Shown here: positions 14,215 through 42,100 of the stretch, in pieces
How the letters are laid out: each line of letters starts with the position of its first letter
Position numbering within the stretch: the first letter of the stretch is position 1
Source: Macrostomum lignano
Taxonomy: Eukaryota
Direction of reading: 5' to 3'
Assembly: GCA_002269645.1 (NCBI GenBank)
Contig: NIVC01002544.1
Coordinates: forward strand, 99,045 to 163,044
DNA: 64,000 nucleotides
Made by a program: the position numbers and the translations under genes
The notes under the pieces: generated by a model
What the model saw: the letters and a program-made list of their open reading frames with translations, nothing else
What the model was told of the DNA's origin: nothing
Database searches by the model: none

Positions 14215-14560
14215 TTCATTTAGGGCTTGTGCTCAAAATTGGCCAGGGGCTCAGGCTCGATTCACAGCCATGAGGGCCAACCCCCCCCCCCGGCACAGAG
14301 AGTGTACATGCCTGACGATTAGAAAGTCAGGCCGCTGTACACCCTGTGTGAGCGTGTGAGGGCGTGCCTGCATACAGTATTAAAGTAGGTGCTCATTAGT
14401 CAGTGGAATGGGCAGAATTGCCTTAACGCTGGTTGTGGGACGGTGGGTGTTTCTACCCGGACCTACACAAGCACCGCACTGAAACATTTGCAGGCCTGCT
14501 GTTGCACGGAGGAGCTGCCAGAGTGCAGCTACTTAACAATAATCCCACCTGGAGGTCAGG
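14215..14560 (+). mobile_element. SINE family B copy
   Basis: CCCCCCGGCACAGAGAGTGTACATGCCTGACGATTAGAAAGTCAGGCCGCTGTACACCC...AACAATAAT tail. Confidence 0.6.
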
Positions 14561-15049
14561 CAGAGGCCACCACAGCCGATTTGCAGCACTCTGCCAGCGA
14601 ATGCACCGAGTTTATTGAGATTCTGGCTGATGGAGAGATTGAAGACTCATAAGTTCGGTGTGTACTCAAAAGCTCACAGTTGAAGGATTTAAGTGACGAA
14701 TCACCAAAATACCTGATGGTCCTCCACACCTGCCTTCTTGCTTCTAATTAATTTAACATATACGAAAAACAATATGATATCAGCAAAACGTGAATATCAT
14801 TGACTTTTTGTTAATGTTACTTTGAACTTATAGATTTTAATCAAACTTTTTCAATCAAGTTTCGCTAAACATGTGCGCCAATAAAGCATTAATTTTCTGC
14901 TTTTAACTCAGAAGTGGCTTTAAATGGACAGTTTAGCCCTGGACACATGGCTTGATTTCTTGCAGGATGTTTACTTAGAACTGATGATTGGGCTGTTTTG
15001 AGGGGCCTGTTCCTGGAAATAGATCGGAAGCTTATCGGAAAGTGACACA

Positions 15050-15645
<596 letters not shown>

Positions 15646-15949
15646 GTTTGCACACTTGAAACTTCCGTACCAGATCGACGTTTGAGCAAGGGTGCTGATA
15701 TTATAACTCATTTGAGGCGCCTGTGGTATTGGTGTAGCTAAAAATACATTCCCAAAACCCAAAATAGAGCATTTTCATTTAAAATAAGAATGGCCAGGAC
15801 TTGGCACGCTGACCAACGCGGAGAGCGTTGCCGAACTGTTTACGAGTTGCAGTGGACGCTTCCGCAAACAGACTGAAATTCCAGCCCGCACGGCAACTGA
15901 GGTCTGCGCTGGTCACTGCCGAAAATTTGATTCGGCAAATCTCAACGCC

Positions 15950-18900
15950 ATGGCAGCATTTGAACTCATGGTGGTTGTATTGTTTCTGGCACTGCACCGA
16001 ACAGGAGCGACCGAAGACTGTGAGTTCGATGACGTGTTTTCAAAAATTTCAAAATATTTTTTTCCGCAGAAGGGGGAGGGCGCAGGAGGGCATGTCCACC
16101 CAGTAAAAGCTATGGGGGGCATGCTAATGCTTTGCCCCTCCCGCGACACTTGGTGACCCGTCATGGAAATCAAAAATTTTGTTTTAGGGTGTTAAAATAT
16201 AGCGCCTGCAGCGCCAAAATGAGGCTCTCGGCGCCAAAATGAGACCCTCGGCGCCAAAATGAGACCCTCGGCGCCAAAATGGGTGCCTGTCTGCGGCGCC
16301 AAAATGAGTGCCTACGGCGGAAAACAGGGTGCCTGCGGCGCCAAAATGAGTGCCTGCGGTGCCAAAATGAGTGCCTGCGGTGCCAAAATGAGTGCCCGCG
16401 GCGCCAAAATGAGTGCCCGCGGCGCCAAAATGAGTGTCCGCGGCGCCAAAATGAGTGCCCGCGGCGCCAAAATGAGTGCTCGCGGCGCCAAAATGAGTGC
16501 CTGCGGCGCCAAAATGAATGCTAACAGCACGTATTTCCATAATAATGTTGGAATGTATTCTTATGTTTTAGAAATTTAGTCATGGGAGCTATTGACTTAC
16601 CATAAAAACCATGGCGACGCCCCTGTGCAGGTGAGCTCCCGATTCGCAGGAGCCGCGTGCTGAGCACCTGGCAGTCGTCGTTTGGCGACGGTCCGACCTG
16701 CTTCTACAACAGAAATCAAACTGATGAAGATGCAGCAATGCAGGAAACAAAAGCTACCTGCAAATTCTTTCACAGCGCTGACAAGAGCTCAGCAGACGGC
16801 GGGTTTCACTGGTTCGCTGTGCAGCTGAATGAGACAGTGCTCATCAGATCTGTGACTGTGAAGGCTCGGCAAGGTAAAATGATAGGATTGATAATTTCGT
16901 ATTTGTGAAGTGAAGATTTAGTATTTACTGTTTGTCGCATCGAATCTTCAGTCACAATTTCGCACCTGTCTGACCACCTGCGGGCGAGCAGCATTGAAAT
17001 ATTCACATCCGGAAACAGCAGCGAGATGTTCTCCGGTGTTGACCACTGCATTTCAAACAGCATGAGCAGGCAGTTCAACGACTCGCGTGAGCAGTGGAAA
17101 TTGTGCGGCAATACAAAAAGCAAGCAGAAAGGGAACATCGCTGCTGGGGAAAATATCACTGTGAGCTGTGTGGCAGAGGTGAGTGCTGAGTCAAACTCTC
17201 GTGAGTCATTTTAATTTTTCTGCAATGCAAAATGAAGCTTATGCATCAGTTTTAACCAAAAAATTTCAGGTTCGACATCTGCTGCTGCGGAGACCCCAGT
17301 CGGCTGAGGGGCAGAACTACATGAACTTCGCCGACTTGAGACTTCAGACTGTGTCGCTGAGTAGGTTGATGGATGAAGATGAATGGAGATGAAGATGGAT
17401 GAATTTTTGATTTTGACTTTGACTTTCCAATCGTCAGGCATGTACACTCTCTGTTCCTTGGGGGGGTGGTACTCATGGGTTGCGAATCTGAAGTCAGAAG
17501 CCTCAAATGAAAGTGGCAGCGCACGGAATCGAACCAGGGGTCGCGGCGCGAGAGGCAGATGCCTTTACCGCTGAGCTCCTGGGGCTCTCTACGAGCGCAT
17601 GCTATTTAACACCCAGAACTAATTGTCCTTGATCCACAACAAGCCTGAAGATACACCTCGGAGTTGATTATCAGCTTTATATTTCTTTTATACACCCAGT
17701 GGGCAGCTAATTATGATTTGCAATTAGGCCATATTTTATATTGAAAAGTCACCAAAATGCTGACTGTATTTTTCAGAATTAGAGAGTCCTCAAGTGGTTG
17801 CTGTGGGCTCCAATTTCACGGTGAGCTGCTGGCTGCAGCAGTGCAACGGCTCAAAGCTGAGTACGAACTCAAGCGAGCTGCAGCTCTGCATTCCAAATGG
17901 AACCTGCGTCTCAAATTTGAAATATTTTATTGCCGATGTGCAGCCTGAGCACTCGGGCAGCTACTCCTGCAAGTTCGGCTCGGTTTCCAAGTCAACTGAA
18001 GTAGCTGTTCTGGGTAAGAGCGCTTTAACTCAGCACTCTGTGTGACTCATGGATGAAGGAATCTTACATGGATGATGGACTCCTTCATCCATGGTGTGAC
18101 CGCAATAAGAGCGCATTTCAATTGACCTGCACCTGCAGCATAGGCTCGATAAATAAATCGTCTTCAATCGCAGTCCTATGTGAGAGACTGCTCTATGCTC
18201 ACATTCTTTCCAACATGCAATTTAAACCTGAGCTTGGATAAAGACGTATGAGCATGCCTGCATAAGCATGAGCAAAACCGACTCCAGAGCCATCTCAGTT
18301 TTCGATACGAGCTACTCCACTTTTAAGCTAGCGCCAGATACTCCACTTCTGAATTGCAGCCTCATCTCCAGACCAAGTGGTGGCGGACAGCGGCAACATT
18401 TCCATCAGCTGCTCCCTGAACTTGAACTTGTCGGATTCAAACATGAAGTCAAGCCGGCTGCAGCTGTGCACTCCAAGCGGGGACTGCCGACACACCCAGC
18501 AGATCCACATTGCTGATGTGAAACCTCGGCATTCTGGAATTTATGCTTGCAAATTCGGCAATGCGTCGAAGTCACTTCAAGTCGCTGTTCTGAGTGAGTC
18601 ATTGATTAGTTGCCTTAAAATGCTTACACTAAAGATGGCGAGAATGCATTCCGATAGGACGGAGATTTTATTCCACCAAAGAATGTAGGGATTTCAATAG
18701 AATAGAAATAGGCTCAGCTTGACTACATTTATGAATCTTAACTTTATTAAATTTCCAGCTTCATCTCCAAGCCAGAATGTTTCCGAAAACGCAAGCTTCA
18801 CCGTGAGCTGCTCGCTGCACTGCGGAAATGCATCGCAATGCTCAGATCGCTTATTGGGTGGCGACCTCCGGCTGTGCCCTCCGAATGGGAGCTGCCTGAC

Positions 18901-21900
18901 AAATTCAAGTCTGCAAGTGGACAGAGCTCAGGCAATGCACTCCGGAGTTTATACTTGCAGATATGACGTCATTGAGATCGAGACAGAAGTCTTTGTTCTT
19001 TGTAAGTAGAAAGTAGGCTGCCTTCAGAATCTTGTTGCTCAGTGTTGCTCAGTGTTGCTCAATGCTGCTCAGTGTTGCTCAGCGTTGCTCAATGTTGCTC
19101 AATGTTGCTCAGTGTTGTTCAATGTTGCTCAGTGTTGCTCAGTGTTGCTTAATGTTGCTCAATGTTGCTCAGTGTTGCTCAGTGTTGCTCAGTGTTGCTC
19201 AGTGTTGCTCAGTGTTGCTCAGTGTTGCTCAGTGTTGCTTAATGTTGCTCAATGTTGCTCAGTGTTGCTCAGTGTTGCTCAGTGTTGCTCAGTGTTGCTC
19301 AATGTTGCTCAATGTTGCTCAGTGTAGCTCAATGTTGCTCAGTGTTGCTCAATGTTGCTCAGTGTTGCTCAGTGTTGCTCAATGTTGCTCAATGTTGCTC
19401 AGTGTTGCTCAGTGTTGCTTAATGTTGCTCGGTGTTGCTCAGTGTTGCTCAGTGTTGCTCAGTGTTGCTCAGTGTTGCTCAGTGTTGCTCAGTGTTGCTC
19501 AGTGTTGCTCAATGCTGCTCAGTGTTGCTCAGTGTTGCTCAGTGTTGCTCAGTGTTGCTCAGTGTTGCTCAATGCTGCTCAGTGTTTCTCAATGTTGCTC
19601 AATGCTGCTCAGTGTTGCTCAGTGTTGCTCAATGTTGCTCAGTGTTGCTCAGTGTTGCTCAGTGTTGCTCAATGTTGCTCAGTGTTGCTCAGTGTTGCTC
19701 AGTGTTGCTCAGTGTTGCTCAGTGTTGCTCAGTGTTGCTCAATGCTGCTCAGTGTTGCTCAGTGTTGCTCAGTGTTGCTCAATGTTGCTCAGTGTTGCTC
19801 AATTTCACAATCGATTAACTCACCTTCATCAGGCGAGTTCCCAGTTCGGCGAAGTCGCATTCTGAGTTCGTGGCAGTCATCATTCGACGATGGTCCGACG
19901 TGTTTCCACAGCAGGAATCAGGCAGACGAAGCCTCCATCATCAGCAACAGGCAAACCAGCTACAAGTTCTTCCACAGCGCCAACAGAAGCCAAGCAGACG
20001 GCGGGTTTCACTGGTTCGCCGTGCAGCTGAATGAGCCAGTGATCATCAGATCTGTGACTGTGAAGGGCAGAGAGGGTGAGTGAGGACAACTTATTTATAC
20101 GCTTCTTCTGTAAGGACTGATTCTCCTGTTCTGAAGATTCCACTGTACAGTAATACGTTTCAACGACATCATAAGTAACTCCTCATCTTATTTTCAGACG
20201 GTGTGACAAGTACTTACAATCGAGCAAAGGACATTGAAATATTTACCTCCAACTCTAGCAGCTCCCTGATCCATGGGGATAACTGCAACACCAAAAAAAT
20301 GAGCTTTCAGTTTAAAAATTCGATGCACCATTGGAGGCCATGCGGCGTGACTGATAAGCAGGGAGACGTCGCAGATGGGGAAATGTTTCACGTGAAATGC
20401 GTTGCTGAGGTAAAAATTTGGAAAAAAAAATTTGGAAATTCTACAGTGATTTGAGTACCATTGTCTTTCCAAGCAACCTATGAGCATTTAAACTGCAGGT
20501 CCGAAGTCTACTCCTGCGAAGAAACGTGTCTAAAGACACGGACGGGCACATGAGCTTTGCTGACCTGAGGCTTCAGACTGGGAAAATCAGTAAGATTTTT
20601 GAGCTGTCATGAGTTGTGTCCAAGTCCTGGTGTGTGTGCTAAGTTGAAGCGCTAGCAGTACATGCAAAATGACTGAAGTTCGTCTCAAAAGTGTCTCAAA
20701 TCATTGCATTTCAGAAGTCGAGAGCCCCAAGGCGGTGCTGCAGCACTCAGCATTCTCAGTGCGCTGCCTGTTGGACTGCAACGGTCGAACCGAATACTCA
20801 CCGAAGTTGGAGCTCTGCCTTCCAAACGGAAGCTGCGTTGGACAAGCTGAAGCCGTCATTCACAGGGCGCAGCTGTGGCACCATGGAAACTACACGTGCA
20901 AGTTGGGCAGCTCGCAGAGCTCAAAGTTCTTAACGGTGTTTTGTAAGTTTTCATCAATAGAAACATGACTTGGTGTTGCATCAGTACTGAATCATTCAAA
21001 AGATTCCATAAGTTGATTCTGGACTCTGGATGACAAATCGATTGCTTAGCATTTGATAATTAGCGTTGCACTGGGACTCCTCTCGTACACAGATTGGAAG
21101 AAAATTCTCGCAAGGAGTCGTGCCAGCTTAAGGCTGGCTGATGGCAGTAGAAGCCATCAATGGCAGCAGATCAGGCCGCATTTCAGGTGACTTCCCTATC
21201 CGGAGGAGCCGCATATCGAGTGCTTGGCAGTCGTCTGCATTCGAAGACACCTGTTTTAATAAAAGAACTGCTGAAGCGGAAGTGAACTTGGAACCATGGA
21301 AGTATTTTCACAGTAGTCGCAGTAGCTCAGCAGACGGCGGGTTTCACTGGTTCGCAGTGAAGCTGGATGAGCCAGTGCTCGTCAGATCGGTCACTGTGAA
21401 GAGCAGAAACAGTGAGTGACTTTTCACTTCTTCATGAGTATTAATCATACCTAAATCTGAGTCCGAATCGTTTTTGTCTGGAGTCTATTAGGTTAAAAAA
21501 CTTCTCAATAAGGTGTTGTCCTGTCCGGCGCAATGGAAAAGCGATGCCAGGTTTTTATTAGTTTTTAGGTCCGTTGCAAATTTATGTTGCTCGTACTAGT
21601 GAAGTAGCCTCTTCAAATTCAAGAAAGCAGAATCAAAGTTGGTCTGCAGAGTAAATTAAATGCTTTTTTACCCAGCATCACTTTTGCAAACACACCAAAT
21701 CCATGAGCAGTCGCGGTTTAATTCCAGACGCAGACTACACGAGGGCAAAGGGGATCGAGATCTTTACGTCAAACAGCAGCGATGAAATATTTTCCGGAAA
21801 CCACTGCGCCTCGAAGAGCATGAGTGCTCAGTTCAATTGCTCATTTCATCTCTGGAGTCTGTGTGGGCAGACAGAGAAGCAAGGAGCAATTCAACCTGGC

Positions 21901-24900
21901 GAAAATTTTACTGTGAGCTGCGTTGCCGAAGTGAGTGACAGCGTTGCGAAGAGATTTATCGATTGCGAGTATTATCAACTCGCAAGACTTACATGTAGAA
22001 TTGTCAGAGCTGTTCAGCACCCATCAAGACCATGAATAGTGGCGGGGTACGAGGTCAACGCGAACTACCAAGAAACTTTCCAGTGGTGGATGGAGACAAT
22101 GGAGTGGCCTAGAGAGTCTGGGGGAGATGGGGATAGCTACAAGAGTCAGTCAGAGTTAGACTACATCCACAGGTGCTTCGCTCGTTTGGCCCATCATGAA
22201 ATTGGAGTTTACAAGAATCTGCTCACAATGGGTGCTGATTCTCAGTTGAGTACCTCTACTCCAAAGTTCGCCTACTAAACGACTCATAGCAGCTGGGCAG
22301 GTGGGAAGGCAGAAGCCATTTCTTCCGACCAGTGAGATTGACCTGAGCACTCTACAAGCTTGAGCAGGAGGGTTGGTAGCTACTCCATCTCCCTCCCTGC
22401 AGAAGAAAGCGCAGTTGTCTGCATTGCCGACCGTAATGGGATTTGGCGGATCATTCTGACTCAATGAAATTCCATAATGGGACTCGGTAATGAGGTTCTG
22501 GAATTAAAAAATCGATGTGGTCTAGGATCTGCTCTAAAAAATAGCGACTTCCGGCCCATGGCTGACCATCACTGTTCCGACTTACCTTTTCAGGTCTGGC
22601 AGCTGCTTCTGAAAAGAAGTGCCTACATTGAGAACAATGAGTACATGAACTTCATGGACCTAACACTCCAAACTGTGCCGATTAGTAAGTTAACCATGAT
22701 TTCTATGCTTCACGATTCACTTATACATTAAAAAATGTTCTAAAACTTTTAGAAGTGCACAGTCCTCAGTTGGTGGCGCAGAACTCCAGCTTCACTGTGC
22801 GCTGCGCCATCAAATGCGATGAAGACGGAGCTGATGTGGCCTCCAACTCGTCTGAGCTGCGGCTCTGCTCTCCGAACGGAAGCTGCTCAGAAGGATCAAC
22901 AGTTCGAATCGACAGTGCTCAGCCCCTGCATTCTGGGAAATATACTTGCAAACTGGGCTCGTTCGAGAGGTCAGCAACAGTCGCAGTGCTGTGTGAGTTC
23001 ATCTAGTTCGACTGACATCAGTGGTACAGCGCGGTGCTCTGATGTGCCAGTGGCCCAGGCTCGATTCCAAGTGCAGTCACACTAATTTGAGGCTAAATTG
23101 GAATCTCGGCTTGGCTCTGCTCGTGCAATTAACGCAGTGAAGTGTACATGCCTAACGATAAATAAAGTTGGGGCCGCTGTACACTCCTGTGTGAGTGTGT
23201 GCCTATGCGTATGACTGCGTACGTATCTGCGCGCTTCTGTGCCTGCTCAGGGGAGTCGGCGGAATGGGCAGTGATGCCTCTCGCCGGTTGTGTGACAATG
23301 TCGCTTAAAGTGCGCCAGGGTGCACAGAGCCCCTGTCTCTAACAATAATAACTTAGTTTGGCTAAAAAGTAGTAATATCCTTGACTATCCGTTATTAAAT
23401 TCCAAATAGCCATTGTGCCAAGTGGTAAAGCGTCTGACTCTTGCATCAAAGTCCCTGGTTCGATTCCGTGGATATTTTTGGGGTTAGGATATTTTCAGCA
23501 GGACGAACGAAAAAGAGCAAAACTATAATTTCAAGTGCCGATGATGATTTCAGCATCCTCAGAACACCAGCTGGTGGCAGAGAACTCAAACTTTTCCGTG
23601 AGCTGCTCGCTGCACTGCAACGGCTCTGAGCAGTGCCCCGACTCCAGCAAGCTGCAGCTCTGCTTGCCAAACGGCACCTGCATTCGGGAAAGCCAGCTCA
23701 ATGTTGCCGGAGCGACTCCGCTGCACTCTGGAGTTTACAGGTGCAGAGCCGGGCCTGCCAATGCGTCAACTCTCGTGACTGTGCTGGGTGAGTCCCGTTT
23801 ACCCTGGCCTTGCCTCCTAGCTGATAATATGTCTTCATTTAGTTTTCCAACGTGTGTCTTTCAATTTTGCTGATGTCAGCCTCTCTCGAACTCCAGCATC
23901 TTCACCTCATCAAGTGGTGGCCGAAAACTCGAGCCTGATATTGAACTGCTCGCTGCATTGTGGGCTCGAAGCAGTCGAATGCGAAGACTCAGCTGCTCAT
24001 GGAAAAATGAAAATTTGCCGTCCCAACAACGGCAGTTGCAGCTCAGATCGATCGTTTCAAATTTCTGCAGCAACTCCGGCTCAAGCTGGAACCTACGCGT
24101 GCAAGATCGGCTCGGCTGAGGCACCGACCTCAGTAGCTGTGCTCTGTGAGTTTGCTGTCACTTCTCGTGACTTTTGGAATGTCATGCTCAATGGTTGTCA
24201 CGTACATTAGAGGCCGTTAGTTTTCCTAAGCATCACTTAGCGCTTGAGATTTTTTCATTCTAGTGGCACTCACTGGATAGTAGGAAATAAAGTTCTACGA
24301 GGGGATGTCTGGAAAAGTTCTGACACTTTTAATCCCAGAGCAGAAACGGAACCAGCTGAAATTTTTATGGCGGCACATTTTGGAGGCCACTCCATCGAAA
24401 GGTTATGCTTGAAAAAGCACCACAATGCCACTGATGGTCTTACAAGAACTGAAAGTCGCAACAAATATAAAGAGATGGTTTGTCTTTGAAAAACCAATTT
24501 TGGTTCTCATATTCTCATTATATTATCAATATGCGCTTGTTCGAACCGGTGCACATCCTCGTTAATTCAGCTGTGCATTTATAACAATCGATCGATCAAT
24601 ATTTCAATTCGGAATGCCGCAAAATTCTGTTCACTGCGGCCTATCTGGTTCAAATTTCCAGTCAGCTCAAAGTCGCTTCAAAGTCCGTCAGTCAAGCGGT
24701 GCCAGGACTCCGCAATAGCACCGACGTAGTAGCCCGAATATTCGATGTAGTCGTTCAGGCCGTCGAACGTAGGCGAGCAAGAGACGTAGCTCTCGGCCAC
24801 GGCGTCATCTGGTTGGCCAGTCAGCCACAGGCTGCCGTCGATGCTGGAGTTGCAGCTGGTCCAGAACCAGCTTCCGCTCGGCTCCTCGCTGCCGGGCAGC

Positions 24901-27900
24901 TGCCAGCCACCGAGCATCACGCTGGTGTCGGTTGTTAGGCGCCAAACTCCGGATATGTTGCAGCTCCTCCAGGTCGCTTACGTCAGCCATGATGACGAGT
25001 CCAGGCTCCGCATCGATGTCAGTCTTGGCTACGAGCCAGTCGTGAATTCCAGAGTACATCTTGTACTTTGTGCCGCACAGGTCGTCAGAGAATCCGGCAG
25101 GGCACAGAGCACCGGGCGGCAGTCCCGGCTGCTGCCTCACGAACACCGGCGCCCTGCGAGTGCAGCCGCAGTCTCTCACGCGCTTGCTGCACCTGTTGAA
25201 CACGAACAGCTGGCACGGACCGTCGGCCAGGCTGAACGCCTGACAGTCGAGCTTTGAGTCGCACAGGCTGGCGCAGTCAATCTTTGATGTGGCATCGCTG
25301 CGAGTCTGCACAAACTCTGGCCTGATGCACTGAAACTTGTCGAGCTCCTGGTATCGAGCTGCCGAGGCCGCAGTCAGCAGCGCAGCCGCTGCAACAAGGC
25401 CCAGAAGATGCGGCATCCCTGGTTAAGGCTATGCGAAGAAATTCGCCTGACTTCGAGGCTTAAGTAGGCAAAAATTTCCGCCAGTTGAGTTCTCCGTTCG
25501 ATACTTTCTTAGAAATGCTTTGATCCAGGCGGCACTTCCCTTTGAGTCAAGACAGAGAAGAGAGCTGCATCCATTAGCATTCGAATTGCTGGATTGTCCT
25601 CTCTTGGCCATCCATCCATTGTATTGAAAGCAATGCTTTTAGGCATGGTGAGGAACAGTCAGCGATTGGAGTGGCTTTTATGCTGTTACTCGCGTGAACT
25701 GCTCACTAAATCGGTAATTCAATATCGATTATTTTAAAAGCATCCTTATTATTGGTCTAATGGTTGATATGGTTCGATTGGTTTCAAAAGACATTTGAGG
25801 CTTTCTGAATCGACAAGTAGCCAAGAGCACATGATGCAGCTTTGAGCAATGCACCAGTCTTGACGATCGGCAATGGTCTCTCTTACTGGTTACCTAACAG
25901 TATCATTGGGCCATCCATACACTACATGACGTACGACTCGCAAAGTACTCGAAAAATCGAGCTTAGCGCAGTTGTTAGTAATGCTAATATTATTAATAGA
26001 TTACACCTACCCTAATGGGCAGATGAAGGCTGCGTACGGCTGTTCAGTCCAAGGATTGGGGGTGGGTGGCCACACACCCTCAATTCCTATCAAGACACTA
26101 GCTAATGCTGGTACCCATTTTACAGCTGGGTGAACTGAAGCAATGCAGCGTTGGGTGTCTTGTTCAAGGACACAGTTTGGTCTTATGAGACAAAAAATGT
26201 CAGAACTTGCCGGACATCACTCATATTTCAATAGAGGGCTCTTATCTGCTCAAAAAGGTAATTCTATGAGAAATTTTTTCAGAGAAATTACCTACGGGTT
26301 GGAAAGTCACAATACAAGCATTATTAGTCCAAGACTGATGATGACACAGGCACAGGTTCAACCCTAAAGCCTGGAAACCAGGTCATTTATTAAAACTTAA
26401 TGACTTCTTGGAAAAACTTGTCGAATGCCTAAACATTTCAGCGATTACTTCAAATAAATCCGTGGCTGTCAACTCAAGCTTCTCCGTTCGGTGCATTCGG
26501 CACTGCGACAGAACTTGTCCTGTGCTGAATTCGAGCAAACTGCAGCTCTGCTTGCCAAACGGCACCTGCTCAGCCAATGACGAACTGCATATCAGCAGTG
26601 CCCAGCCTCATGAGCACTCTGGAAACTACACTTGCCAAATGGATGCTGTTCGAACATCAGCCTCTGTTACCGTACTTTGTAAGTCGACTGTTATTGAGAA
26701 ATTTCGCCTTCAGATGGAACAGAGACACGTTGAAAAGTCCCTCTCTCTCTGAACACACTGTAGACCCGCCATCAAGCGTATCAGTCTCTGCCCCGAACTC
26801 AAGCAGCTGCGACAGTCCGTCCGACATCGTCGTGCACTTTACATCCTCCGCATCTCAGCCTGCACCCGAGCACAGTTGCAGTGCTGCTGCTGACATGGCT
26901 GCAATGGAAAACTTCACCCGCCTTTCAGAAACGAGTTTTACTAAAGTCAATAACGGTTCTTACGTCAGCCAGTGGAAACTCGACTTTGATAGCAATGAGA
27001 AGCTGTCTAAGCTAGAGAGCGTCTTCATCAACTGCACGGCTGAGGGGAGCCACTCGGACAGCGGGTTCGCCTACTCACTGAGTCGCAGTCTCAACTGGAG
27101 TTGCAGAAGTCTAAGAGGGGAGTTCAGCCATCCCCCAGGATTGAACAAAAGCTTCTTCTTAGCGATTCTGAGCATGGGAGCAGCGGCCTCTGTGATTGCA
27201 TTGGTTATAATTATTGTTGCGGCTTTGGTCAGTAGCTTGTCCGCCATACACGCTGCCCACTTGCATGCGCTTTAGCATATTGATTTATCAAATAGTCGTT
27301 TTGCACATTTCAGTGCAAATCCGGAACCACTGAGCCGTCAGCAATAACGCTGAGCCTCAAGTCGCTTCCCTCAGTGAGTCAGTTAGTCCCGGATCCACCG
27401 GAGACGGTTGAGGCTCCTCCGGTGAGTTGCTCGCTATCTGTGCAAATACTAAGTTTTTAGCCTTAATGGGCATATTGAATCCGAATGGCTGTGGGAGACG
27501 TCAGATCTATCGGTTTTGGCCATAGACAGAAGCTCGAAACCAATAAAAACCAAACCAATTTTTCTACAAAAAACTCAAAACAGACGCCCAAATAAAAGTA
27601 ACGTCATTAACTGAGGGGGTGCAGAAGATTACAATTTTAACAAATTAAACTACTTTTTTGCTTATCTAAATGCATACCCGTGTCGCATCGTGCCCATGAA
27701 GATCCGTGAGGATCGACCTTCAGGCAGATGGGACAGTGAGAACTTACTTTGTGATAGGAGTACAATCGCGAATTCTCCTCTGACTTAGCGACTTCGTTTT
27801 AGCGTTTAAAGTTTTTCAGTCAACTATAGCTTGACGAGATCCGTAACACGAATAAATTATGAGCTTCGACGTCAAAAGCCAGCATCAACATTTTTTTCAC

Positions 27901-28057
27901 ACTTCAGACGCGCCACTACTTTGACTACGAGGAGCCGGAGTGCAGCTACATGCTGGTGATGCCGGCCGCCCAGGCTGCCCAGGCCAGGCGGGTCCGGACT
28001 GAGTCTGACGACAGCGAGTGCACCGTCTATGAGGAAATCGTCGGGGACGGCGACTGA
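15950..28057 (+). CDS. G4: 21-exon receptor, SP-L-Ig3-L-Ig-L-Ig4-MP-TM-tail with ITSM (~1420 aa)
   Basis: Exons 15950-16019; L1 16631-16873, 16952-17178, 17270-17360; Ig 17777-18013, 18360-18593, 18759-19001; L2 19833-20075, 20198-20409, 20499-20589; Ig 20715-20942; L3 21187-21411, 21728-21930, 22594-22684; Ig 22753-22992, 23554-23787, 23897-24145, 26442-26678; MP+TM 26764-27227; tail 27314-27373 (or 27421), 27908-28057. Every exon length fits its phase with no stops; no second SP exon seen. Confidence 0.85.
16210..16515. repeat. 21-bp minisatellite in G4 intron 1
   Basis: Unit GGCGCCAAAATGAGTGCC(T/C)GC. Confidence 0.9.
17425..17580 (-). mobile_element. SINE family B copy with clear tRNA-like head
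   Basis: Minus strand: GGAGCTCAGCGGTAAAGGCATCTGCC...GGTTCGATTCC, then ...GAGTGTACATGCCTGACGATTGGAAAG. Confidence 0.7.
18135..18185 (+). pseudogene. Remnant 3' end of an Ig exon (matches G7 Ig1)
   Basis: CACCTGCAGCATAGGCTCGATAAATAAATCGTCTTCAATCGCAGTCCTAT/GTGAG versus 51338-51390; no 5' half present. Confidence 0.7.
19032..19800. repeat. 10-bp minisatellite (TGTTGCTCA[G/A])n
   Basis: Intron between Ig3 and L2 of G4; paralogous array at 53163-53910. Confidence 0.95.
23035..23345 (+). mobile_element. SINE family B copy
   Basis: GGCTCGATTCC B-box, central GTACATGCCTAACGAT...GCCGCTGTACAC, AACAATAATAA tail; aligns with 49545-49870 (minus). Confidence 0.7.
23408..23475 (+). other. tRNA-like sequence (pseudo-tRNA or isolated SINE head)
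   Basis: GCCAAGTGGTAAAGCG...GGTTCGATTCC boxes are present, but acceptor and anticodon stems do not pair well. Confidence 0.45.
24678..25416 (-). pseudogene. Intronless SP + PAN/apple + C-type lectin gene nested antisense in a G4 intron; one +1 frameshift
   Basis: SP MPHLLGLVAAAALLTAASA; PAN-like DCASLCDSKLDCQAFSLADGPCQL; the CTLD continues after removing 1 nt near 24930-24936: SVMLGGWQ...WFWT...WLTGQPDD...LND. Confidence 0.7.
26000..26175 (-). mobile_element. SINE family A partial copy
   Basis: Aligns with 7407-7575 (GCTAATGCTGGTACCCATTTTACAGCTGGGTGAACTGAAGCAAT...TTCAAGGACAC). Confidence 0.65.
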
Positions 28058-28199
28058 CGAGCGAAAATTGAAATAAACCTTGCGGACTCTGTTTAATCTG
28101 TTTACGAGCTAATCGCTCTTGATCTCGAGCTTCCCTTGCTCTTCTTTTTTTCCTTGGTGTTTGGTCCCTGAGTGTTTTTTCGTCTATGCATGACATTTA

Positions 28200-33100: not shown

Positions 33101-36100
33101 CGACAAAGTCCACCGAAGTTGCAGTTCTGAGTGGGGGTTGTCGCCTGCCGTTGATGTTTAAATAAATTCCGTTCAATATTTTATTTGACTAAATCTGAGA
33201 CTTCCATGTCTCAGATGCTGAGACACATGTACAGCTTAATATGAGGCTTATTGGACACACGCACTCCCACCTGTACCTGCAGCTGCGACAACCGATCAAG
33301 TAGTCGCTGAGGACTCCAGCTTCAATGTGAGCTGCATCTTGCACAGCGATGAGTACAATTTGTTTGGCAGGCCGCAGCTGTGCCTCCCAAATGGCAGCTG
33401 TTTCAACAAGACGGCACTGCAAGTTTTCAACGCAACCGCTCAGAGTTCAGGCTCCTACAGGTGCCGTCTCCGCGGGGCTGAAGTCACAGCGACTGTTTCT
33501 GTACTGTGTAAGAAACTGGCCTCTCTCTGTTTTCACTTTTATGCAGGCATTACAAATGGATTTGAATTTTTCAATTGCAGCATCGTCTAAAGATCAAGTC
33601 GTGGCTGCAAACTCCAGCTTCAAGGTCACCTGCCAGCTGCACCCTGACATCGGTGCAGATTGGAGTAGCCTACTGCTCTGCCAGCCCAACGGAAGCTGCA
33701 GCACAGGTAGTCGCATACTGCAGATTTCCAGTGCTGCACCCGAGAATGCTGGAATCTACACCTGCAGATTGGGCTTGCTGGTTGCGTCAGCCTCTGTTGC
33801 AGTGCTTTGTAAGTCCTGGCCTCTGTCATGCTGCTTAGTTAAGCACTCAGAATGTTGCCGTGACTCCTGACTTGATTTTGCCAACAGACCCGCCAAGAGT
33901 TGTTGCTATTTCGGTTTTCAACTCACACAGCTGCTCAAGTCAATCAGATGTGATCGTTCAGTTGAACTCATCTGCATCTCAGCCGGTTTCGGAGCACAGC
34001 TGCAGGGTTGATGAAGATGGACAAAGAATGAGAAATATAACGCTCCTGTCATTCGTGAGTTTCGATGGATTAGGAATTTCTGAAGGGTATTGAACTTTAG
34101 TTTGAGACTAGCAATCTACGCCCCCCGTTGGGGAGCTAAAGAAATGAAATACACGTTTTTTAATAAGCTACATGTAGCCTTGAAATCCTAAAAAATCTCC
34201 TGTCAAACTTCTAATAGCCCTATCCCCAACCCTAAACATAACCCTAAATTTAATATTTTGTCCATGAGTTTTTGCATGATGCTTCTATGATTTTTTGCAT
34301 GACGCTTCCATGATTTTTGCATGACGCTTCTATGCTAAACATTTTTAATAAGCTACATGAGCTAAGTTATAAGCTACCCTAACCCTAGCACTAACCCGAA
34401 TCTTAACGCTATAACCCTAACCCTAACCATATACCCTAACACCAACGCTAACACTAACCCTACAGCCTGACATCTGTATAAGTTTGTGAAGCGCTAGTAG
34501 TATTTTTTTAGCTTAGTATCTTAGCGTTGGGGAGCCAAAAAATGCAGTACAAGTTTTGTAATAAGCTACATGTAGCATCACTTTGCAATATCTCTCTGCA
34601 ATATTTGCATCTCTTTGCAATAATATACTGCTTTGCAAGCAGTCCCTTGTAAGCCTTGACATGTCAGTAATTCCCCCCCCCACAAGCTTTAACATTTCAA
34701 CTTCCCCTTGACATCTCAGCGATGCTCCCCATAAGCCATGAAATCTAAAAAAATCTGTCAACTTTCTAACCCTAACCCTAACCCTAACCTAACCTAACCC
34801 TAAAGCATTGACATTTCAGTAATTCTCTCTAAGAGTCATTATAGCACTACTACAGCATTATAGCGATTCCCTGCAAGCCTCGACATCGTAGGGATTCCCA
34901 AATGAATCTCTTAACTTCGACATGAAGCTTCTTATTTTTTACATTACGCTTTTTCTATCAGCGATCCCTCCCGTGAGGAGCCAACAAATAATGTAATAAA
35001 AAGTTTTCAATAGACTACATGTAGCTTCTGACTTTAGCCTTGACATCTCATTTATTCCCCCATGAGCCTTGACATCTCAGCTATTCCCCTCGTAAGCCTT
35101 GAAATGTCAGCAATGCCCCCATAAACCTTGATATCTGAAAAATCCCCTGTTAACCTTGAAACCCGCTAAAATCTAACCCTCAACCTTTGACACTACGCTT
35201 TGACATCGTAGCAATTCCCAAATTAATATTTTAACTTCGATATGACTCTTCTTTTATGTATACATAGTGCTTCTTTTCTTTTTTACATGACTCTTCTTCT
35301 ATCAGCGCCCCCCCCGTGGCGAGCCAACAAAGAAGGTAATAAAAAAATTGAGTAAACTACATGTACTTTGAAGTAGCTTCTGACTTTTGCTTTGACATCT
35401 CAGAAACCCCCCCCCCCTAATCTCAGTTATTCTCCGTGAGCCTTGACATCTCAGTAATTCTCCCAGCACAGCACAATAGCTTCATTTAATTTTTACATGA
35501 CACTTCTTTCATGTCTGACATGACGCTTCTTTTGATTTTTACATGACGCTTCTATGATTTCTAAAATGACACTTACATTAGTTTTTATATAAGGCTTCTA
35601 TGACTTTTTAAATGACGCTTCTATGATTGTTTATATGACGTTTCTATGATGTTTTTAGCTCATTAGCTTTTGATGTTTGACGCTTCTATGATTTCTTAAA
35701 TGACACTTCCATTAGTTTTTATATAAGTTTTGTAATAAGTTTTGTATAAGTTTTGTAATTTTTACATGACGCTTCTACGATTGTTTACATGACGTTTCTA
35801 TGATGTTTTTACATGACGCTTCTATGATTTTTTACATGACGCTTCTATGATTTTTTACATGACCCTTTTTTTTATTTTTACATGACGCTTCTATGATTGT
35901 CTACATGACGCTTCTATACTTTTTTACATGACGCTTGTATGATTTTTTTACATGACGCTTCTATGATTTTTTACATGACGCTTCTATGATTGTTTACATG
36001 ACGCTTCTATGATTGTTTACATGACGCTTCTATGATTTTTCTACATGACGTTTCTATGATTTTTTACATGACGCTTCTATGATTTTTACATGACGCTTCT

Positions 36101-39100
36101 ATGATGTTTTAAATGTCGCTTCTATGATTTTTTTAAATGACGCTTCTATGATTTTTTACATGACGCTTCTATGATTTTTTACATGACGCTTTTATGATTT
36201 TTACATGACGCTTCTATGATTGTTTACATGACGCTTCTATACTTTTTTACATGACGCTTGTATGATTTTTTTACATGACGCTTCTATGATTTTTTACATG
36301 ACGCTTCTATGATTGTTTACAGGACGCTTCTATGATTGTTTACATGACGCTTCTATGACTTTTTTACATGACGCTTCTATGATTGTTTACATGACGCTTC
36401 TATGATTTTTTAAATGACGCTTCTATGATTTTTATATGACGCTTCTACGATTGTTTACATGACGCTTTTATGATTGTTTACATGACGCTTCTATACTTTT
36501 TTACATGACGCTTGTATGATTTTTTTACATGACGCTTCTATGATTTTTATATGACGCTTCTACGATTGTTTACATGACGCTTCTATGATTATTTACATGA
36601 CGCTTCGATTATTTTACATGACTCTTCTATGATTTTTTACATGACGCTTCTATGATTGTTTACATGACGCTTCTATGATTGTTTACATGACGCTTCAATG
36701 ATTCTTTAAATGACGCATTTATGATTTTTATATGACGCTTCTATGATTTTTTAAATGACGCTTCTACGATTTTTTACATGACGCTTCTATGATTTTTTAA
36801 ATGACGCTTCTACGATTTTTTACATGACGCTTCTATGATTTTCACATGACGATTCTTTTTAAAAATTCTTTTAGTTTTCCTGACGTTGAAAAGCTTTAAT
36901 TAAAAAAATTATATTCTATGAAAATTCGAACCATCGTCGCTGCATTTAGCAGTTCAGTTTGTTCACCTCTAGGCTAGCTCTCATCGTTTTGATAACATCA
37001 AATTCTGCACTTATATAATTCAACACTTGAAAATCCAAGCATAGAGTAAATCACACGAAGCAGTTATGACATAATCAGTTTCTCAGTCAGTCAGTATCAG
37101 TTAACAATATGGTTACGCAATTTAAATCAAGTCTGGTGCTACGCTTCCACACTGCATTTTCAATTCAAGTCGAAGTTACAATTCAGTTATGATGCAATCT
37201 ATTTCAGAATCAGAATTCAACCAGTCAGTTTTTTTCTCTAGCATTCTTACGAGCTACAATACATTTCAAGTCGAAAAGTTTGCTTGACCTTTGCAAAAAA
37301 GCATGTTTTTCGAATATTTAATGCCTTTAGCATCGAGCAATTTCTTAGCCACGATGCATGTACAGTCACGGGAAAATTTCTGATCGAACAGTGCAAGTTC
37401 GAACAAAATCGGTCCAGCCATTTTTTCTCTAATCGATCACATAGACACAGACAGACCATTTTTAGTATATAGGACTAGCAATCTTCGCCCCCCGATGGGG
37501 GACATCTGGATAGAATCTCTGTTCTCTACAAGTAACAAAAAAACAGCTAAAAATCCTTCAAAAAGACAACAGACAAACTGCTCAAATGAAGTGCATTGCA
37601 AAAAGAAATCATCCCAAGACCGCAAGCATCCCCCAGATAGCAAGCATCCCTCAGATAGCAAGCATCCCCCAGATAGCAAGCATCCCCCAGATAGCAAGCA
37701 TCCCCCAGATAGCAAGCATCCCTCAGATAGCAAGCATCCCCCAGATAGCAAGCATCCCCCAGATAGCAAGCATCCCCCAGATAGCAAGCATCCCTCAGAT
37801 AGCAAGCATCCCCCAGATAGCAAGCATCCCCAAGATAGCAAGCATCCCCTAGATAGCAAGCATCCCCCAGATAGCAGGCATCCCCAGATAGCAAGCATCC
37901 CCAGATAGCAGGCATCCCCCAGATAGCAAGCATCCCCCAGATAGCAAGCATCCCCCAGATAGCAAGCATCCCCAAGATAGCAAGCATCCCCAAGATAGAT
38001 AGCATCCCCAAATAGTAAGCATCCACCAGACAATAAGTAGCTAGTGCGACAATTTCCTTAGCATTATAGCGGCTCCTTTAAAATTCGCTTACTTTTACGT
38101 TTGAAATTGTGTATCTTTTATGTTTAACAAGGTGGCTCTTTTATGTTATACATTGTGGCTCTTTTATGTTATACATTGTGGCTCTTTTTTGTTCTACGCT
38201 CGTACATGGTAACTCTTTTATGTTTGATACGGTGGCTTTTCAATGTCTGACATGGTGGCTCTTCTATGTTTGACATGGGGGCTCCTCTTTGTTTGACATG
38301 GGGGCTCTTCTATGTTTGACATGGGAGCTCTTCTATGTTTGACAAAGTGGCTTTTTAATGTTTGACATGGTGGCTCTATTATGTTTAACATGGTGGCTCT
38401 TTAATGTTCAAAAAGGTGGCTCTTTTATGTTTGACATGGTGGCTCTTTAATGTTTGACATGGTGGCTCTTTAATGTTTGACATGGTGGCTCTTTAATGTT
38501 AGACAAAGTAGCTCTTTAATGTTTGACATGATGGCTCTTAAATGTTAGACATGGTGGCTCTTTACGTTTTGACATGGTGGCTCTTTAATGTTGGACATGG
38601 TGGCTTTTTAATGTTAGACATGGTGGCTCTTTAATGTTCGACATAAAGTCACTTATATGTTTGACATGGTGGCTCTTTAATGTTTGACATGGTAGCTCTT
38701 TTATGTTCGACATGGTGGCTCTTTTATGTTCGAAATGGTGTCGCTTCAATGTTTGACATGGAGTTACGTATATGTTTTACATGGTGGCTCTTTTATGTTC
38801 GACATGGTGGCTCTTTAATGTTTGACATGGGGTCTCTTCAATGTTTGACATGGAGTTACGTATATGTTTGACATGGTGGCTCTTTAATGTTTTACATGGT
38901 GGCACTTTCATGTTTGACCTGGAGGCTCTTTAATATTTGACATGGTGGCTCTTTTATGTTTGACATGGTGGCTCTTTTATCTTTGACATGGTGGCTCTGT
39001 AATGTTCGACATGGAGTCATGTATATGTTTCACATGGTAGCTCTTAAATGTTCGACATGGTGGCTCTTTAATGTTCAACATGGAGTCATGTATATGTTTG

Positions 39101-42100
39101 ACATGGTGGCTCTTAAATGTTCGACATAGTGGCTCTATAATGTTTGATATGGTGGCTCTTCAATGTTTGACATGGTGGCTCTTTAATGATCGACATGGCG
39201 TCATGTATATGTTTGACATGGTAGCTCTTGAATGTTCAACATGGAGTCATGTATATGTTTTACATGGTGGCTCTTAAATGTTCGACATGGTGGCTCTTTA
39301 ATGTTTGACATAGTGTCTCTTTAATGTTTGACATGGAGTCATGTATATGTTTGCCATGGTGGCTCTTTAATGTTAGACATGGTGGCTCTTTTATGTTTTG
39401 CATGGTGGCTCTTTTATGTTCGACATGGTGTCTCTTCAATGTTTGACATGGCGTCATGTATATGTTTTACATGGATGCTCTTGTATTTTTAACATGTTGA
39501 CTCTTTAATGTTCGAAATGGTGGCTCTTAATTGCCTAACATGGAGTCACGTATATGTTTGACATGGAGTCATGCATATGCCTGATATGGTAGCTCTTTAA
39601 TGTTTTACATGGAGTCACGTATATGTTTCACATGTTGGCTATTTTATGTTTGACATGGTGGTTCTTAAATGTTCGACATGGTGGCTCTTTAATGTTTTAC
39701 ATGGTGGCACTTTCATGTTTGACCTGGTGGCTCTTTAATGTTTGACATGGTGGCTCTTTAATATTTGACATGGTGGCCCTTTTATGTTCGACATGGTGGC
39801 TCTTCAATGTTTGACATGGAGTCATGTATATGTTTGACCTGGTGGCTCTTTAATGTTTGACATGGTGGCTCTTTAATGTTTTACATGGTGGCACTTTCAT
39901 GTTTGACCTGGTGGCTCTTTAATGTTCGACATGGTCGCTCTTTAATGTTCGACATGGTGGCCCTTTAATGTTCGACATGGTGTCGCTTCAATGTTTGACA
40001 TGGAGTTACGTATATGTTTTACATGGTGGCTCTTTTATGTTCGACATGGCGTCATGTATATGTTTGACATGGTAGCTCTTGAATGTTCAACATGGAGTCA
40101 TGTATATGCTTGACATGGTAGCTCTTGAATGTTCAACATGGAGTCATGTATATGTTTGACATGGTGGCTCTTAAATGTTCGACATGGTGGCTCTTTAATG
40201 TTTGACATGGAGTCATGTATATGTTTGACATGGTAGCTCTTGAGTGTTCGACATAGAGTCATGTATATGTTTGCCATGGTGGCTCTTTAATGTTAGACAT
40301 GGTGGCTCTTTTATGTTTTGCATGGTGGCTCTTTTATGTTCGACATGGTGTCTCTTCAATGTTTGACATGGAGTCATGTATATGTTTGACATGGTGGCTC
40401 TTGTATTTTTAACATGTTGGCTCTTTAATGTTCGACATGGTGGCTCTTTAATGTCTAACATGGAGTCATGTATATGTTTGACATGGAGTCATGTATATGT
40501 CTGATATGGTAGCTCTTTAATGTTTTACATGGAGTCACGTATATGTTTCACATGGTGGCTATTTTATGTTTGACTTGGTGGTTCTTAAATGTTCGACATG
40601 GTGGCTCTTTAATGTGTTACATGGTGGCACTTTCATGTTTGACCTGGTGGCTCTTTAATGTTTTACATATAGTGTCTCTTTAATGTTTGACATGGAGTCA
40701 TGTATATGTTTGACATGGTAGCTCTTGAATGTTCGACATAGAGTCATGTATATGTTTGCCATGGTGGCTCTTTAATGTTAGACATGGTGGCACTTTCATG
40801 TTTGACCTGGTGGCTCTTTAATGTTTGACATGGTGGCTCTTTAATATTTGACATGGTGGCCCTTTAATATTTGACATGGTGGCCCTTTAATGTTCGACAT
40901 GGTGGCTCTTCAATGTTCGACATGGAGTCATGTATATGTTTGACCTGGTTGCTCTTTAATGTTTGACATTGTGGCTCTTTAATGTTCGACATGGTGGCTC
41001 TTTTAGGTTTGAAATGGTGGCTCTTAAATGTTTGACATGGTGGCTTTTTAATGTTCGACATGGTGGCTCTTTTATGTTCGACATGGCGTCATGTATATGT
41101 TTCACATGGTAGCTCTTGAATGTTCAACATGGAGTCATGTATATGTTGGACATGGTGGCTCTTTAATGTTCGACATGGTGGATCTTTAATGGTCGACATG
41201 GTGGCTCTTTAATGTTCGACATGGTAGCTCTTTAATGTTCGACATGGTGTCTCTTTAATGGTCGACATGGTGGCTCTTTAATGGTCGACATGGTGGCTCT
41301 TTAATGTTTGACATGGTGGCTCTTTAATGTTTGACATGGTGGCTCTTTAATGTTTGACATTGTGCTTTTTGTGTTTAGCATTTTGTGTTTTTAAGGTTTT
41401 TGAATAAAAAAATCTTTTTGCACTACTAAGATTCGAACCCAGATCGCTGCATTAGCAGTCCAGTCTGTTCGCATCTATGCTATCTCTTTTCAATTGGAGA
41501 TCATGAATTGTGGCCCTTATAATTAAATTCTTATAGCAAATCGGTTAGAGTAAAAAGTTATGACATAATCAATTTCTCAGTCAGCCAGTATCAGTGTCAA
41601 TTCAAGTTAGCAATATTGTTACGCAATTTAAATCAAGTTTTGTGTGCATTTGTTCGGCACTGTTTTCAACTGGTTGTGATGTAATCTTTATCACAATTGG
41701 AATTCAGTCAGTCAGTTTTTTCTCTAGCATTCTTACAATGCATTTCAGGTCGAAAGAGCTGCTTGACCTTTGCAAAAAAGCATGTTTTTCGAATATTTAA
41801 TCCCTTTAATATTGAGCAATTTCTTAGCCAAGATGCATGTACCGTCCCAGGAAAATTTCTGATCGAATGGTGCAAGTTTGAAGAAAATCGGTTGAGCCAT
41901 TTTTTCTGAAATCTATCGCATACCTACCCACATACAGACAACTCATTTTTAGTATATAGGATTTTTAGTATATAGGAAGGACTGCCTGACGGGCTGATTG
42001 CAGATCTCAAGCAGCAAAGGCTCTGTGAGCAGGTGGGCACTCGCTGGTGATGAGGCTGAGAAGCTGGGCTGGAGCAGCGGCTCAGTGAGCTGCACCGCGG

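Follow-up and report, generated by a model that had tools for sequence, protein, structure and literature searches.

The G4 gene and its terminal exon

A stretch of 64,000 nucleotides from the flatworm Macrostomum lignano (GenBank assembly GCA_002269645.1, contig NIVC01002544.1, positions 99,045 to 163,044 of the forward strand), in the following called the window, was analyzed with respect to the last exon of a receptor gene named G4. All coordinates given refer to the window. An original prediction, made from the sequence alone, had described the protein tail encoded by this exon as an immunoreceptor-type signaling tail with an exact ITSM (immunoreceptor tyrosine-based switch motif), TVYEEI, accompanied by YEEP and YMLV. 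Judged from its splice signals and its paralogs, the exon is real and closes the coding region of G4; the only tyrosine that is invariant in the family is that of YMLV, which the original prediction had placed last.

The window carries a head-to-tail tandem array of at least 8 related receptor genes which are assembled from phase-1 immunoglobulin (Ig)-like exons (...FTVSC..LQLCLPNGSC..HSGxYTC...) and a three-exon module termed D. The features of G4 relevant for the tail are as follows:

15950-28057, plus strand: G4 gene, from ATG at 15950 to TGA at 28057; the spliced assembly is free of stop codons
26764-27227, plus strand: stalk and transmembrane (TM) exon; donor TTG/gtcagt, phase 0, in a context like that of the G1 donor
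27153-27227, plus strand: TM helix FFLAILSMGAAASVIALVIIIVAAL
27314-27421, plus strand: candidate cytoplasmic mid exon of 36 amino acids, CKSGTTEPSAITLSLKSLPSVSQLVPDPPETVEAPP; phase 0-0, tttcag/../gtgagt
27908-28057, plus strand: terminal coding exon (tail exon), 49 amino acids and TGA, phase 0 acceptor
27926-27937, plus strand: YEEP (tyrosine Y7 of the tail), specific for G4
27938-27964, plus strand: site 1, ECSYMLVMP; family motif (E/D)CSY(L/M/Y)x(V/I)x(P/A)
28013-28054, plus strand: site 2, C-terminal peptide SECTVYEEIVGDGD, containing TVYEEI
28072-28077, plus strand: polyadenylation signal AATAAA, 14 nt 3' of the stop codon

Translation of 27908-28057 on the plus strand yielded TRHYFDYEEPECSYMLVMPAAQAAQARRVRTESDDSECTVYEEIVGDGD followed by the stop codon, exactly as had been predicted, with TVYEEI at 28022-28039 and with YEEP and YMLV present in the tail. 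A strong acceptor, consisting of a polypyrimidine tract and CAG (tttttcacacttcag/ACG; AG at 27906-27907), precedes the exon, the TGA at 28055-28057 closes it, the polyadenylation signal follows, and homologous exons exist in paralogs; hence, its assignment as the last exon of G4 was confirmed. An open reading frame (ORF) on the minus strand (27897-28196) also covers the exon; it was rejected because paralogs conserve the plus frame only.

That the tail exon is joined to the TM exon could be upheld in part. Annotated models of paralogs splice the two in frame, either directly, as in P0002 (G2) and P0007 (G5), or via a mid exon of 35-38 amino acids, as in G1, G3, and P0006. The protein P0003 is identical to the TM-mid-tail splice product of G3 that had been predicted from the DNA beforehand, and P0006 originates from a GenBank annotation built on a genome-guided RNA-seq assembly (PMC5730564). 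For G4, the junction is probably not direct but has a mid exon in between. The candidate mid exon at 27314-27421 begins 86 nt after the TM exon, the corresponding distances being 65 nt in G1 (mid exon 1753-1857) and 79 nt in G3 (11561-11674); its similarity to that of G3 is weak (shuffle p = 0.0175), and an alternative donor is present after 27373. When scanned likewise, G5 showed no mid exon and G2 only a doubtful candidate, as would be expected from the annotated models of both genes. Inclusion of the G4 mid exon is likely, at roughly two chances in three, and G4 then probably consists of 21 exons; the frame of the tail exon is the same with the mid exon included or skipped. The G3 mid exon at 11561-11674 (RISRRSRSRSSPSARLKIYSIVQVNSMMIPYDAQPTDA) contains two extra tyrosines (YSIV, YDAQ) that occur neither in the G4 candidate nor in the mid exons of P0006 and G1.

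The spliced G4 assembly, built from DNA, comprises a coding sequence of 4200 nt in 20 exons that encodes 1399 amino acids; every junction is GT-AG. The order of domains is signal peptide-D-Ig3-D-Ig-D-Ig4-stalk-TM-tail, D being the three-exon discoidin-like module, so that the ectodomain contains 3 discoidin-like and 8 Ig-like domains, followed by the stalk. A Pfam analysis of the whole protein returned Ig_2 (76 bits, cut-off 27), Ig_3 (56.1, cut-off 30), V-set (47, cut-off 26), and I-set (44.7, cut-off 23.7) as well as F5_F8_type_C_2 (43.8, cut-off 27.8) and F5_F8_type_C (36.5, cut-off 28.2). A single G4 exon scanned alone remained below the Pfam threshold for Ig, and single D modules gave F5_F8_type_C matches in 10 out of 11 cases, all of them sub-threshold. 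An AlphaFold2 model of the D module was of moderate confidence (pLDDT 67.6, pTM 0.70); its best Foldseek matches in the PDB were the F5/8 type C structure 3nng, CBM32, the C2 domain of factor VIII (FVIII), and F-lectin (E about 1e-4, TM-score 0.46-0.57). A D-module sequence profile found no match among PDB sequences; fold comparison alone gave matches. G4 is thus a bona fide member of the immunoglobulin superfamily (IgSF) and of the F5/8 type C (discoidin) domain family.

The helix at 27153-27227 is the sole strongly hydrophobic 19-amino acid window of the G4 protein (Kyte-Doolittle (KD) value 2.72). Since 46 N-glycosylation sequons are located N-terminal and none C-terminal of this single TM segment, G4 is predicted to be a type I membrane glycoprotein with a cytoplasmic tail. 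We have also considered that the three D modules mark three separate genes. This was rejected: the phase-1 acceptors of the internal D exons fit the preceding Ig donors, and neither a signal-peptide exon nor a tail is present between the D modules.

Two further observations concern the ectodomain region. Residues 406-435 of G4 gave a weak Pfam match to Herpes_gE_N (E = 0.0088) inside the Ig region, and P0002 carries the UniProt name 'Glycoprotein E'; this similarity most likely reflects a generic Ig-like likeness and not a viral relationship. Furthermore, the 2.3-kb intron between Ig7 and Ig8 harbors an ORF of about 203 amino acids on the minus strand (24681-25422) with a signal-peptide-like start (MPHLLGLVAAAALLTAASAA), which is cysteine-rich and gave weak matches only to PAN_3 and PAN_4. 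The frame adjoining it looked like a C-type lectin by eye; Pfam gave no support for that assignment.

Tail exons of paralogous genes

Tail exons were compared among seven distinct paralogs, namely G1 to G5 in the window and L1a and L1b on another M. lignano contig (L001). The copies in the window other than that of G4 are:

2183-2338, plus strand: tail exon of G1, ...EPECSYLSV...SDCTVYLEIVADAN, stop; Tyr at site 2, exact ITSM; fits P0004 and P0008
7862-7996, plus strand: tail exon of G2, AGPRVPDSDCSYLTV...SDCTEFLKIVADGD, stop; Phe at site 2; P0002 near-identical
14494-14652, plus strand: tail exon of G3, ACCCTEELPECSYLTI...SECTEFIEILADGEIEDS, stop; Phe at site 2; mid exon 11561-11674 upstream
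42506-42622, plus strand: tail exon of G5, TVSNLREASSECSYYTV...ADGYREMVADGD, stop; Tyr at site 2, no ITSM, shortened linker; P0007

These four copies and the two on L001 scored 59-93 bits against the tail profile (E = 1e-17 to 1e-27), and a six-frame search by tblastn and with the tail hidden Markov model (HMM) revealed no further tail-exon copies. In each of the seven exons, a phase 0 AG acceptor precedes the ECSY motif by a few codons, and the TM-exon donors examined, those of G1 to G5, are likewise in phase 0. Nucleotide matches between paralog tail exons averaged 0.51 as compared to 0.06-0.09 for shuffled exons and for the 150 nt on either side. The duplications are old, since the tail proteins share 33-56% identity and the flanks are unalignable. 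Judged from this contrast between exon and flanks, the tail exon is under purifying selection.

The family members differ widely in size. G1 (275-2338), or P0008, encodes 328 amino acids with a signal peptide, one discoidin-like module, a TM segment, and the tail, without any Ig domain, and the range extends to G4 with its 11 ectodomain modules; common to both are the N-terminal D module and the tail only.

Protein databases were searched for additional relatives. When the spliced G4 C-terminus was used in a word-indexed search, the only match was P0001, an M. lignano protein of 45% identity with a different C-terminus. A profile of the C-termini of the window paralogs (A1) led to five M. lignano proteins. 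With a profile of C-termini including the tail module (A2), 1.84 billion representatives were scanned exhaustively by HMMER; this gave seven matches, five of them named as M. lignano and two, P0007 and P0008, without a source name but near-identical to G5 and G1. No ortholog outside M. lignano was found among these 1.84 billion representatives, a library with few proteomes of free-living flatworms. A tail-only profile (A3) recovered no known positives and was disregarded as evidence. The models could be matched to genes as P0002 to G2, P0003 to G3, P0007 to G5, and P0004 and P0008 to G1; an encoding contig (L001) is on record for P0006, and none for P0001, P0002, and P0003. Database labels of family members read 'Ig-like domain-containing' or 'hypothetical' only, and the literature yielded no paper on this receptor family and nothing for the locus tag Mlig029700. 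The genes make up a previously undescribed family of Ig/discoidin receptors, restricted to this lineage and expanded in tandem, whose members share a selected bipartite cytoplasmic module.

Conserved and variable motifs in the tail

The G4 tail is acidic with a net charge of -8, and comparison with its paralogs makes it recognizable as two related half-motifs. At site 1, neither the seven genomic copies nor the allelic proteins deviate at C12, S13, or Y14, the tyrosine is encoded by TAC in each of the seven, and the residues at positions -3 to -1 of this tyrosine (E/D, C, S) are fixed in the paralogs. Site 1 lies 11-17 residues into the exon; its distance from the membrane is 14-50 residues and varies with the presence of the mid exon.

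Site 2 follows the family motif (S)(E/D)CT(V/E)(Y/F)x(E/K)(I/M)(V/L)(A/G)D(G/A)(D/E/N) and is located at or near the C-terminus. Its aromatic residue, Y41 in G4, was among the tyrosines expected to be conserved in homologs, and this expectation failed. Tyrosine, with the codon TAT, occupies the position in three paralogs, namely G1 (TVYLEI), G4 (TVYEEI), and G5 (DGYREM); phenylalanine, with TTC or TTT, occupies it in the other four, namely G2 (TEFLKI), G3 (TEFIEI), L1a (TEFIEM), and L1b (TEFIEI), and also in the allele P0002. The residue at -1 is V or G with Tyr and E with Phe. In comparison to the window, the changes in P0002, P0007, and P0008, which are alleles or homeologs, are found at Y+1, Y+2, or outside the motif, and both the aromatic residue and position +3 are unchanged. 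When site 2 was left out, the tails did not cluster by their Tyr or Phe state; this state has probably switched more than once, the compared sequences being short. The spacing between site 1 and site 2 amounts to 24-27 amino acids in six paralogs and to 16 in G5.

The consensus of the ITSM is T-x-Y-x-x-(V/I) (PMC8631942). TVYEEI of G4 fits it and is located in the predicted cytoplasmic tail, yet the exact pattern is found in only two of the seven paralogs, G1 and G4, and its tyrosine is not kept among the homologs. In the light of the paralogs, the exact ITSM is a state specific for G4 and G1 of an aromatic motif that varies between Tyr and Phe, and it does not define the family. YEEI is exact in G4 alone; paralogs have YLEI, YREM, FIEI, FLKI, or FIEM instead. 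According to work of Songyang and colleagues from 1993, Y-E-E-I is reportedly the core of the optimal Src-family SH2 ligand, and the G4 tail matches this core in sequence. Conservation of the YEEP tyrosine, which had also been anticipated, was not found either: the segment HYFDYEEP with Y4 and Y7 has no counterpart in any paralog.

The ITIM (immunoreceptor tyrosine-based inhibition motif) follows the consensus (S/I/V/L)-x-Y-x-x-(I/V/L) (PMC8631942, PMC9546547). No match to it was found anywhere in the G4 tail; site 1 reads C-S-Y-M-L-V, with Cys at -2 in all seven paralogs. The tail was also checked for an immunoreceptor tyrosine-based activation motif (ITAM) or a hemITAM, and none was found.

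The significance of these matches was estimated from 200,000 shuffles of the 49-amino acid G4 tail. An ITSM (T.Y..[VI]) appeared in 2.4% of the shuffles, YEEI in 0.15%, YxxP in 15%, and YxxPhi in 55%; at least one out of six motifs of the immuno type was present in 24%. Taken alone, the motif matches of G4 exceed chance only weakly, and the weight rests on the paralog comparison; it is the conservation of the exon that clearly exceeds chance. Two further patterns are degenerate. The endocytic pattern YxxPhi is present at site 1 in all seven paralogs, and the pattern (W/F/Y)-x-x-(L/I/V) with acidic residues, Ser, or Thr in front, known as LC3-interacting region (LIR) or Atg8-interacting motif (AIM), fits site 2 in six of them, G5 having Met at +3.

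Function of the cytoplasmic tail

The prediction of an immunoreceptor-type signaling tail stands insofar as the tail is a cytoplasmic, selected element of an Ig receptor for which tyrosine docking is plausible; it does not stand with regard to the ITSM and YEEP tyrosines, which are not conserved. Our preferred reading, to which we assign a probability of about 0.4, is that site 1 may serve as a phosphotyrosine docking site and site 2 as an auxiliary contact that could also be phosphorylated in G4, G1, and G5. The G4 tail would then represent a family-specific docking platform made of linear motifs. Its conserved working core would be the tyrosine of site 1, which would become phosphorylated by a Src-type kinase upon ligand-driven clustering and would be read by an SH2 protein of the class binding pY-hydrophobic-x-hydrophobic. 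In the Phe paralogs, site 2 would provide a second contact independent of phosphorylation; in G4, G1, and G5, it would additionally be a phosphotyrosine site, giving G4 a two-site geometry as in vertebrate ITIM-ITSM pairs. Switching of the ITSM type would at most be a subfamily elaboration and would not define the tail.

Several findings point in this direction. The hydroxyl group appears to matter at site 1, because Phe, which a single transversion would produce, is accepted at site 2 and yet absent from site 1 in all paralogs. Positions -3 to -1 would be used by kinases and by SH2 domains that read position -2, and would not be used in YxxPhi sorting; their fixation may thus argue for a kinase or a -2-reading SH2 domain over AP-2 mu2. 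The spacing between the two sites, held in six of the seven paralogs, is also in favor of docking, and so is the other type of tail found in G6 and G7, which is tyrosine-rich as well and indicates that tyrosine motifs recur in the family. Platyhelminths possess SH2-containing kinases of the Src family and of the Syk type (PMC2820527, PMC3135232).

Other findings weigh against docking. With Cys at -2, site 1 fits neither the ITIM nor the ITSM consensus (PMC8631942), and it also matches the generic endocytic YxxPhi that more than half of the shuffled tails (55%) contain. Site 2 has Phe in four of seven paralogs and is conserved to +8, past the usual reach of an SH2 domain; because of both properties, a phosphorylation-independent ligand fits site 2 better. 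Furthermore, conservation was judged within the paralogs of one species, so that paralog counts do not represent independent events, and the databases searched contained neither a G4 model nor a transcript-derived G4 protein.

The sites may alternatively function in sorting, which we regard as rather doubtful. Unphosphorylated site 1 would be bound as YxxPhi by AP-2 mu2 for endocytosis, and the run of Ser, Asp, and Glu together with a hydrophobic pair near the C-terminus would act like an acidic cluster and a dileucine signal. In this case, G4 would take ligands inward as an endocytic lectin/Ig receptor without signaling through kinases and SH2 proteins, and the array would encode an ordinary set of endocytic lectin-like receptors. 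Y-x-x-(V/I) occurs in all seven paralogs at 14-50 residues from the membrane, most paralogs possess an acidic Ser-rich run before site 2 (ESDDSE, NSDTASD, PDDRSD, DSDSE), the E-F-x-E-I-(V/L) of the Phe paralogs places an acidic residue four positions before the I-V or I-L pair, and the ectodomain contains lectin-like discoidin modules. Furin, CI-MPR, sortilin, and DEC-205 are endocytic type I receptors in which YxxPhi is combined with a C-terminal acidic cluster; the ectodomain of DEC-205 is of the lectin type, and CI-MPR binds mannose 6-phosphate. G4 resembles these proteins in the membrane-proximal Y-x-x-hydrophobic, the acidic run containing Ser, and the hydrophobic pair near the C-terminus. 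In contrast to them, the pair is I-V, I-L, or M-V and not L-L or L-I, the conserved Cys and the conserved positions -3 to -1 have no counterpart there, and no homology exists. I-V and M-V pairs are in fact poor dileucine signals, G5 lacks the acidic run, the YxxPhi pattern is degenerate, as its frequency in the shuffles indicates, and binding of mu2 would leave the invariant E/D-C-S and the Pro at +5 unexplained. Sorting and docking are compatible with each other, and in known receptors one tyrosine serves both purposes.

Site 2 could also be a phosphorylation-independent aromatic motif, either of the LIR or FIP200-interacting region (FIR) type or the ligand of a lineage-specific partner, in which case TxYxx[VI] in G4 and G1 would be coincidental. 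The core of LIR and FIR motifs is Theta-X-X-Gamma preceded by acidic or Thr residues, as exemplified by 'DS-FVEI' of OPTN (PMC7615515), and site 2 corresponds to this pattern in its exchange of Tyr and Phe, in the I or M kept at +3, and in the acidic residues, Ser, and Thr upstream. The Phe paralogs read S-E-C-T-E-F-I-E-I, the conservation to +8 (VADGD) passes the SH2 footprint, an exact ITSM is confined to two of seven paralogs and arises in 2.4% of shuffles, and the tails do not cluster by their Tyr or Phe state once site 2 is excluded. However, [WFY]xx[LIV] is very degenerate as well, G5 has Met at +3, and the invariant tyrosine of site 1 is left unexplained. To our knowledge, there is little precedent for an LIR in a receptor of the plasma-membrane type. 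On balance, we consider this explanation of site 2 unlikely.

Very improbable is a complete lack of function, according to which G4, situated in a rapidly evolving array, would be decaying or not transcribed, with its tail similarity stemming from recent duplication: the missing G4 model and transcript-derived protein, the 92% identity to G7 over 2.4 kb (by recent duplication or gene conversion), and the satellite-filled introns are countered by 20 of 20 exons being open with canonical splice sites across 4.2 kb, by the tail exons pointing to old duplications of a selected exon, and by the polyadenylation signal after the stop.

Comparison with known receptor systems

The closest functional analogues of the G4 family are vertebrate receptors with an ITIM and an ITSM as well as clustered IgSF families of invertebrates that have tyrosine motifs in their tails. 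PD-1, PECAM-1/CD31, CD33-related Siglecs, SIRP-alpha, and G6b-B are vertebrate type I Ig receptors that carry an ITIM and an ITSM. G4 resembles them as a type I Ig receptor with a short unstructured tail, in which two Tyr-x-x-(V/I/L) motifs are about 18-27 residues apart and the distal one is a T-x-Y-x-x-(V/I) near the C-terminus; besides TVYEEI in G4, this motif is TVYSEV in PECAM-1 and TEYSEI or TEYSEV in Siglecs. In contrast to these receptors, with which no sequence homology exists, the proximal motif of the G4 family has Cys instead of I, V, L, or S at -2, the distal Tyr is replaced by Phe in four of seven paralogs, the distal motif is embedded in an extended conserved peptide that ends with ADGD-COOH, and the flatworm ectodomain mixes discoidin-like modules with Ig domains.

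The Alr genes of Hydractinia (PMC9546547) and the fester genes of Botryllus (PMC12582321) are, like the G4 family, type I IgSF genes that are tandemly clustered, restricted to their lineage, and variable in domain number, with tyrosine motifs in the cytoplasmic tails. Their tails are ITAM/ITIM-like, and function was inferred from these motifs and from SH2 effectors encoded in the genomes. Alr tails are too diverse to be aligned and the ectodomains are conserved, whereas in the flatworm family no C-terminal element is better conserved than the tail, which is common to genes with 1 to 11 ectodomain modules; furthermore, the G4 tail contains no ITAM. The G4 family is not homologous to the Alr or fester families. 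We know of no allorecognition biology in Macrostomum.

Ig domains are combined with domains of a carbohydrate-binding type also in snail FREPs and amphioxus VCBPs, which form expanded, fast-evolving families. These proteins are secreted and possess neither a TM segment nor a signaling tail, and their lectin domains are fibrinogen-related or chitin-binding. The G4 family shares with them the combination of Ig and lectin-like modules and differs from them in its TM segment, its tail, and its discoidin-like lectin module.

Innate immune and cell-recognition receptors of flatworms are poorly known, and transgenesis is available in M. lignano (PMC5730564). Should phospho-docking prove to be the role of the invariant tyrosine, the animal would be tractable for the study of receptor signaling by tyrosine motifs beyond deuterostomes and cnidarians. 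The natural series of Tyr and Phe at site 2 constitutes a ready-made mutational experiment. The perfect match to the ITSM and pYEEI in one gene is the least conserved part of a conserved tail.

A more far-reaching interpretation, which we consider quite improbable, is that the array would be a flatworm-specific cluster of immune-type receptors whose signaling module, with phosphotyrosines in tandem, would have converged on the ITIM-ITSM pairs of vertebrates, and that the tail types would be functional classes. The traits that would suit such a cluster are IgSF and lectin-like modules, differences in the number of domains, and exon shuffling of recent date. Tails of the Tyr type (G1, G4, G5) would then be switchable, those of the Phe type (G2, G3) constitutive, and those of the YEN type (G6, G7) activating, and paired-receptor logic would have been invented independently in Platyhelminthes.

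Other features of the array

G6 (46745-46843) and G7 (56337-56441) are devoid of the ECSY...ADGD tail and have the second, unrelated tail type instead, ending with ...SASEYENSEYKLENATGIYIL and stop in G6 and with ...SASMEYENSGYNLEDATGVYVT and stop in G7. Both share three tyrosines including YEN, which is pYxN-like. A degenerate tail of this second type in which the tyrosines are replaced (AAENENSEDKLENAAAV) is located on L001 at 5387-5437; no copy was found near G4.

A block of 2.4 kb is 92% identical between G4 (18565-20949) and G7 (52711-55064), introns included, and spans Ig3, a (TGTTGCTCAG)n minisatellite, D2, and Ig4. This indicates a recent segmental duplication or gene conversion that would have reshuffled modules between paralogs.

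Between two stalk exons of G5, an AT-rich block (about 34100-42000, GC content 0.37-0.39) consists mostly of satellite arrays with units of 23 bp (60 copies, 35490-36856), 18 bp (37622-38030), and 23/46/69 bp (142 copies, 38092-41375). Very pure, long micro- and minisatellites furthermore occupy almost all long introns and intergenic spacers, at 1052-1573, 2550-3618, 6081-6702, 9930-10449, 12005-13420, 15050-15646, 19033-19801, 45282-45856, 47282-47710, and 56465-57564. Their units include (TCAG)n, (GATA)n, (GCCT)n, and (ACTG)n as well as repeats of 42 bp (34 copies), 46 bp (11 copies), and 10 bp (77 copies), and several of them give rise to long spurious ORFs.

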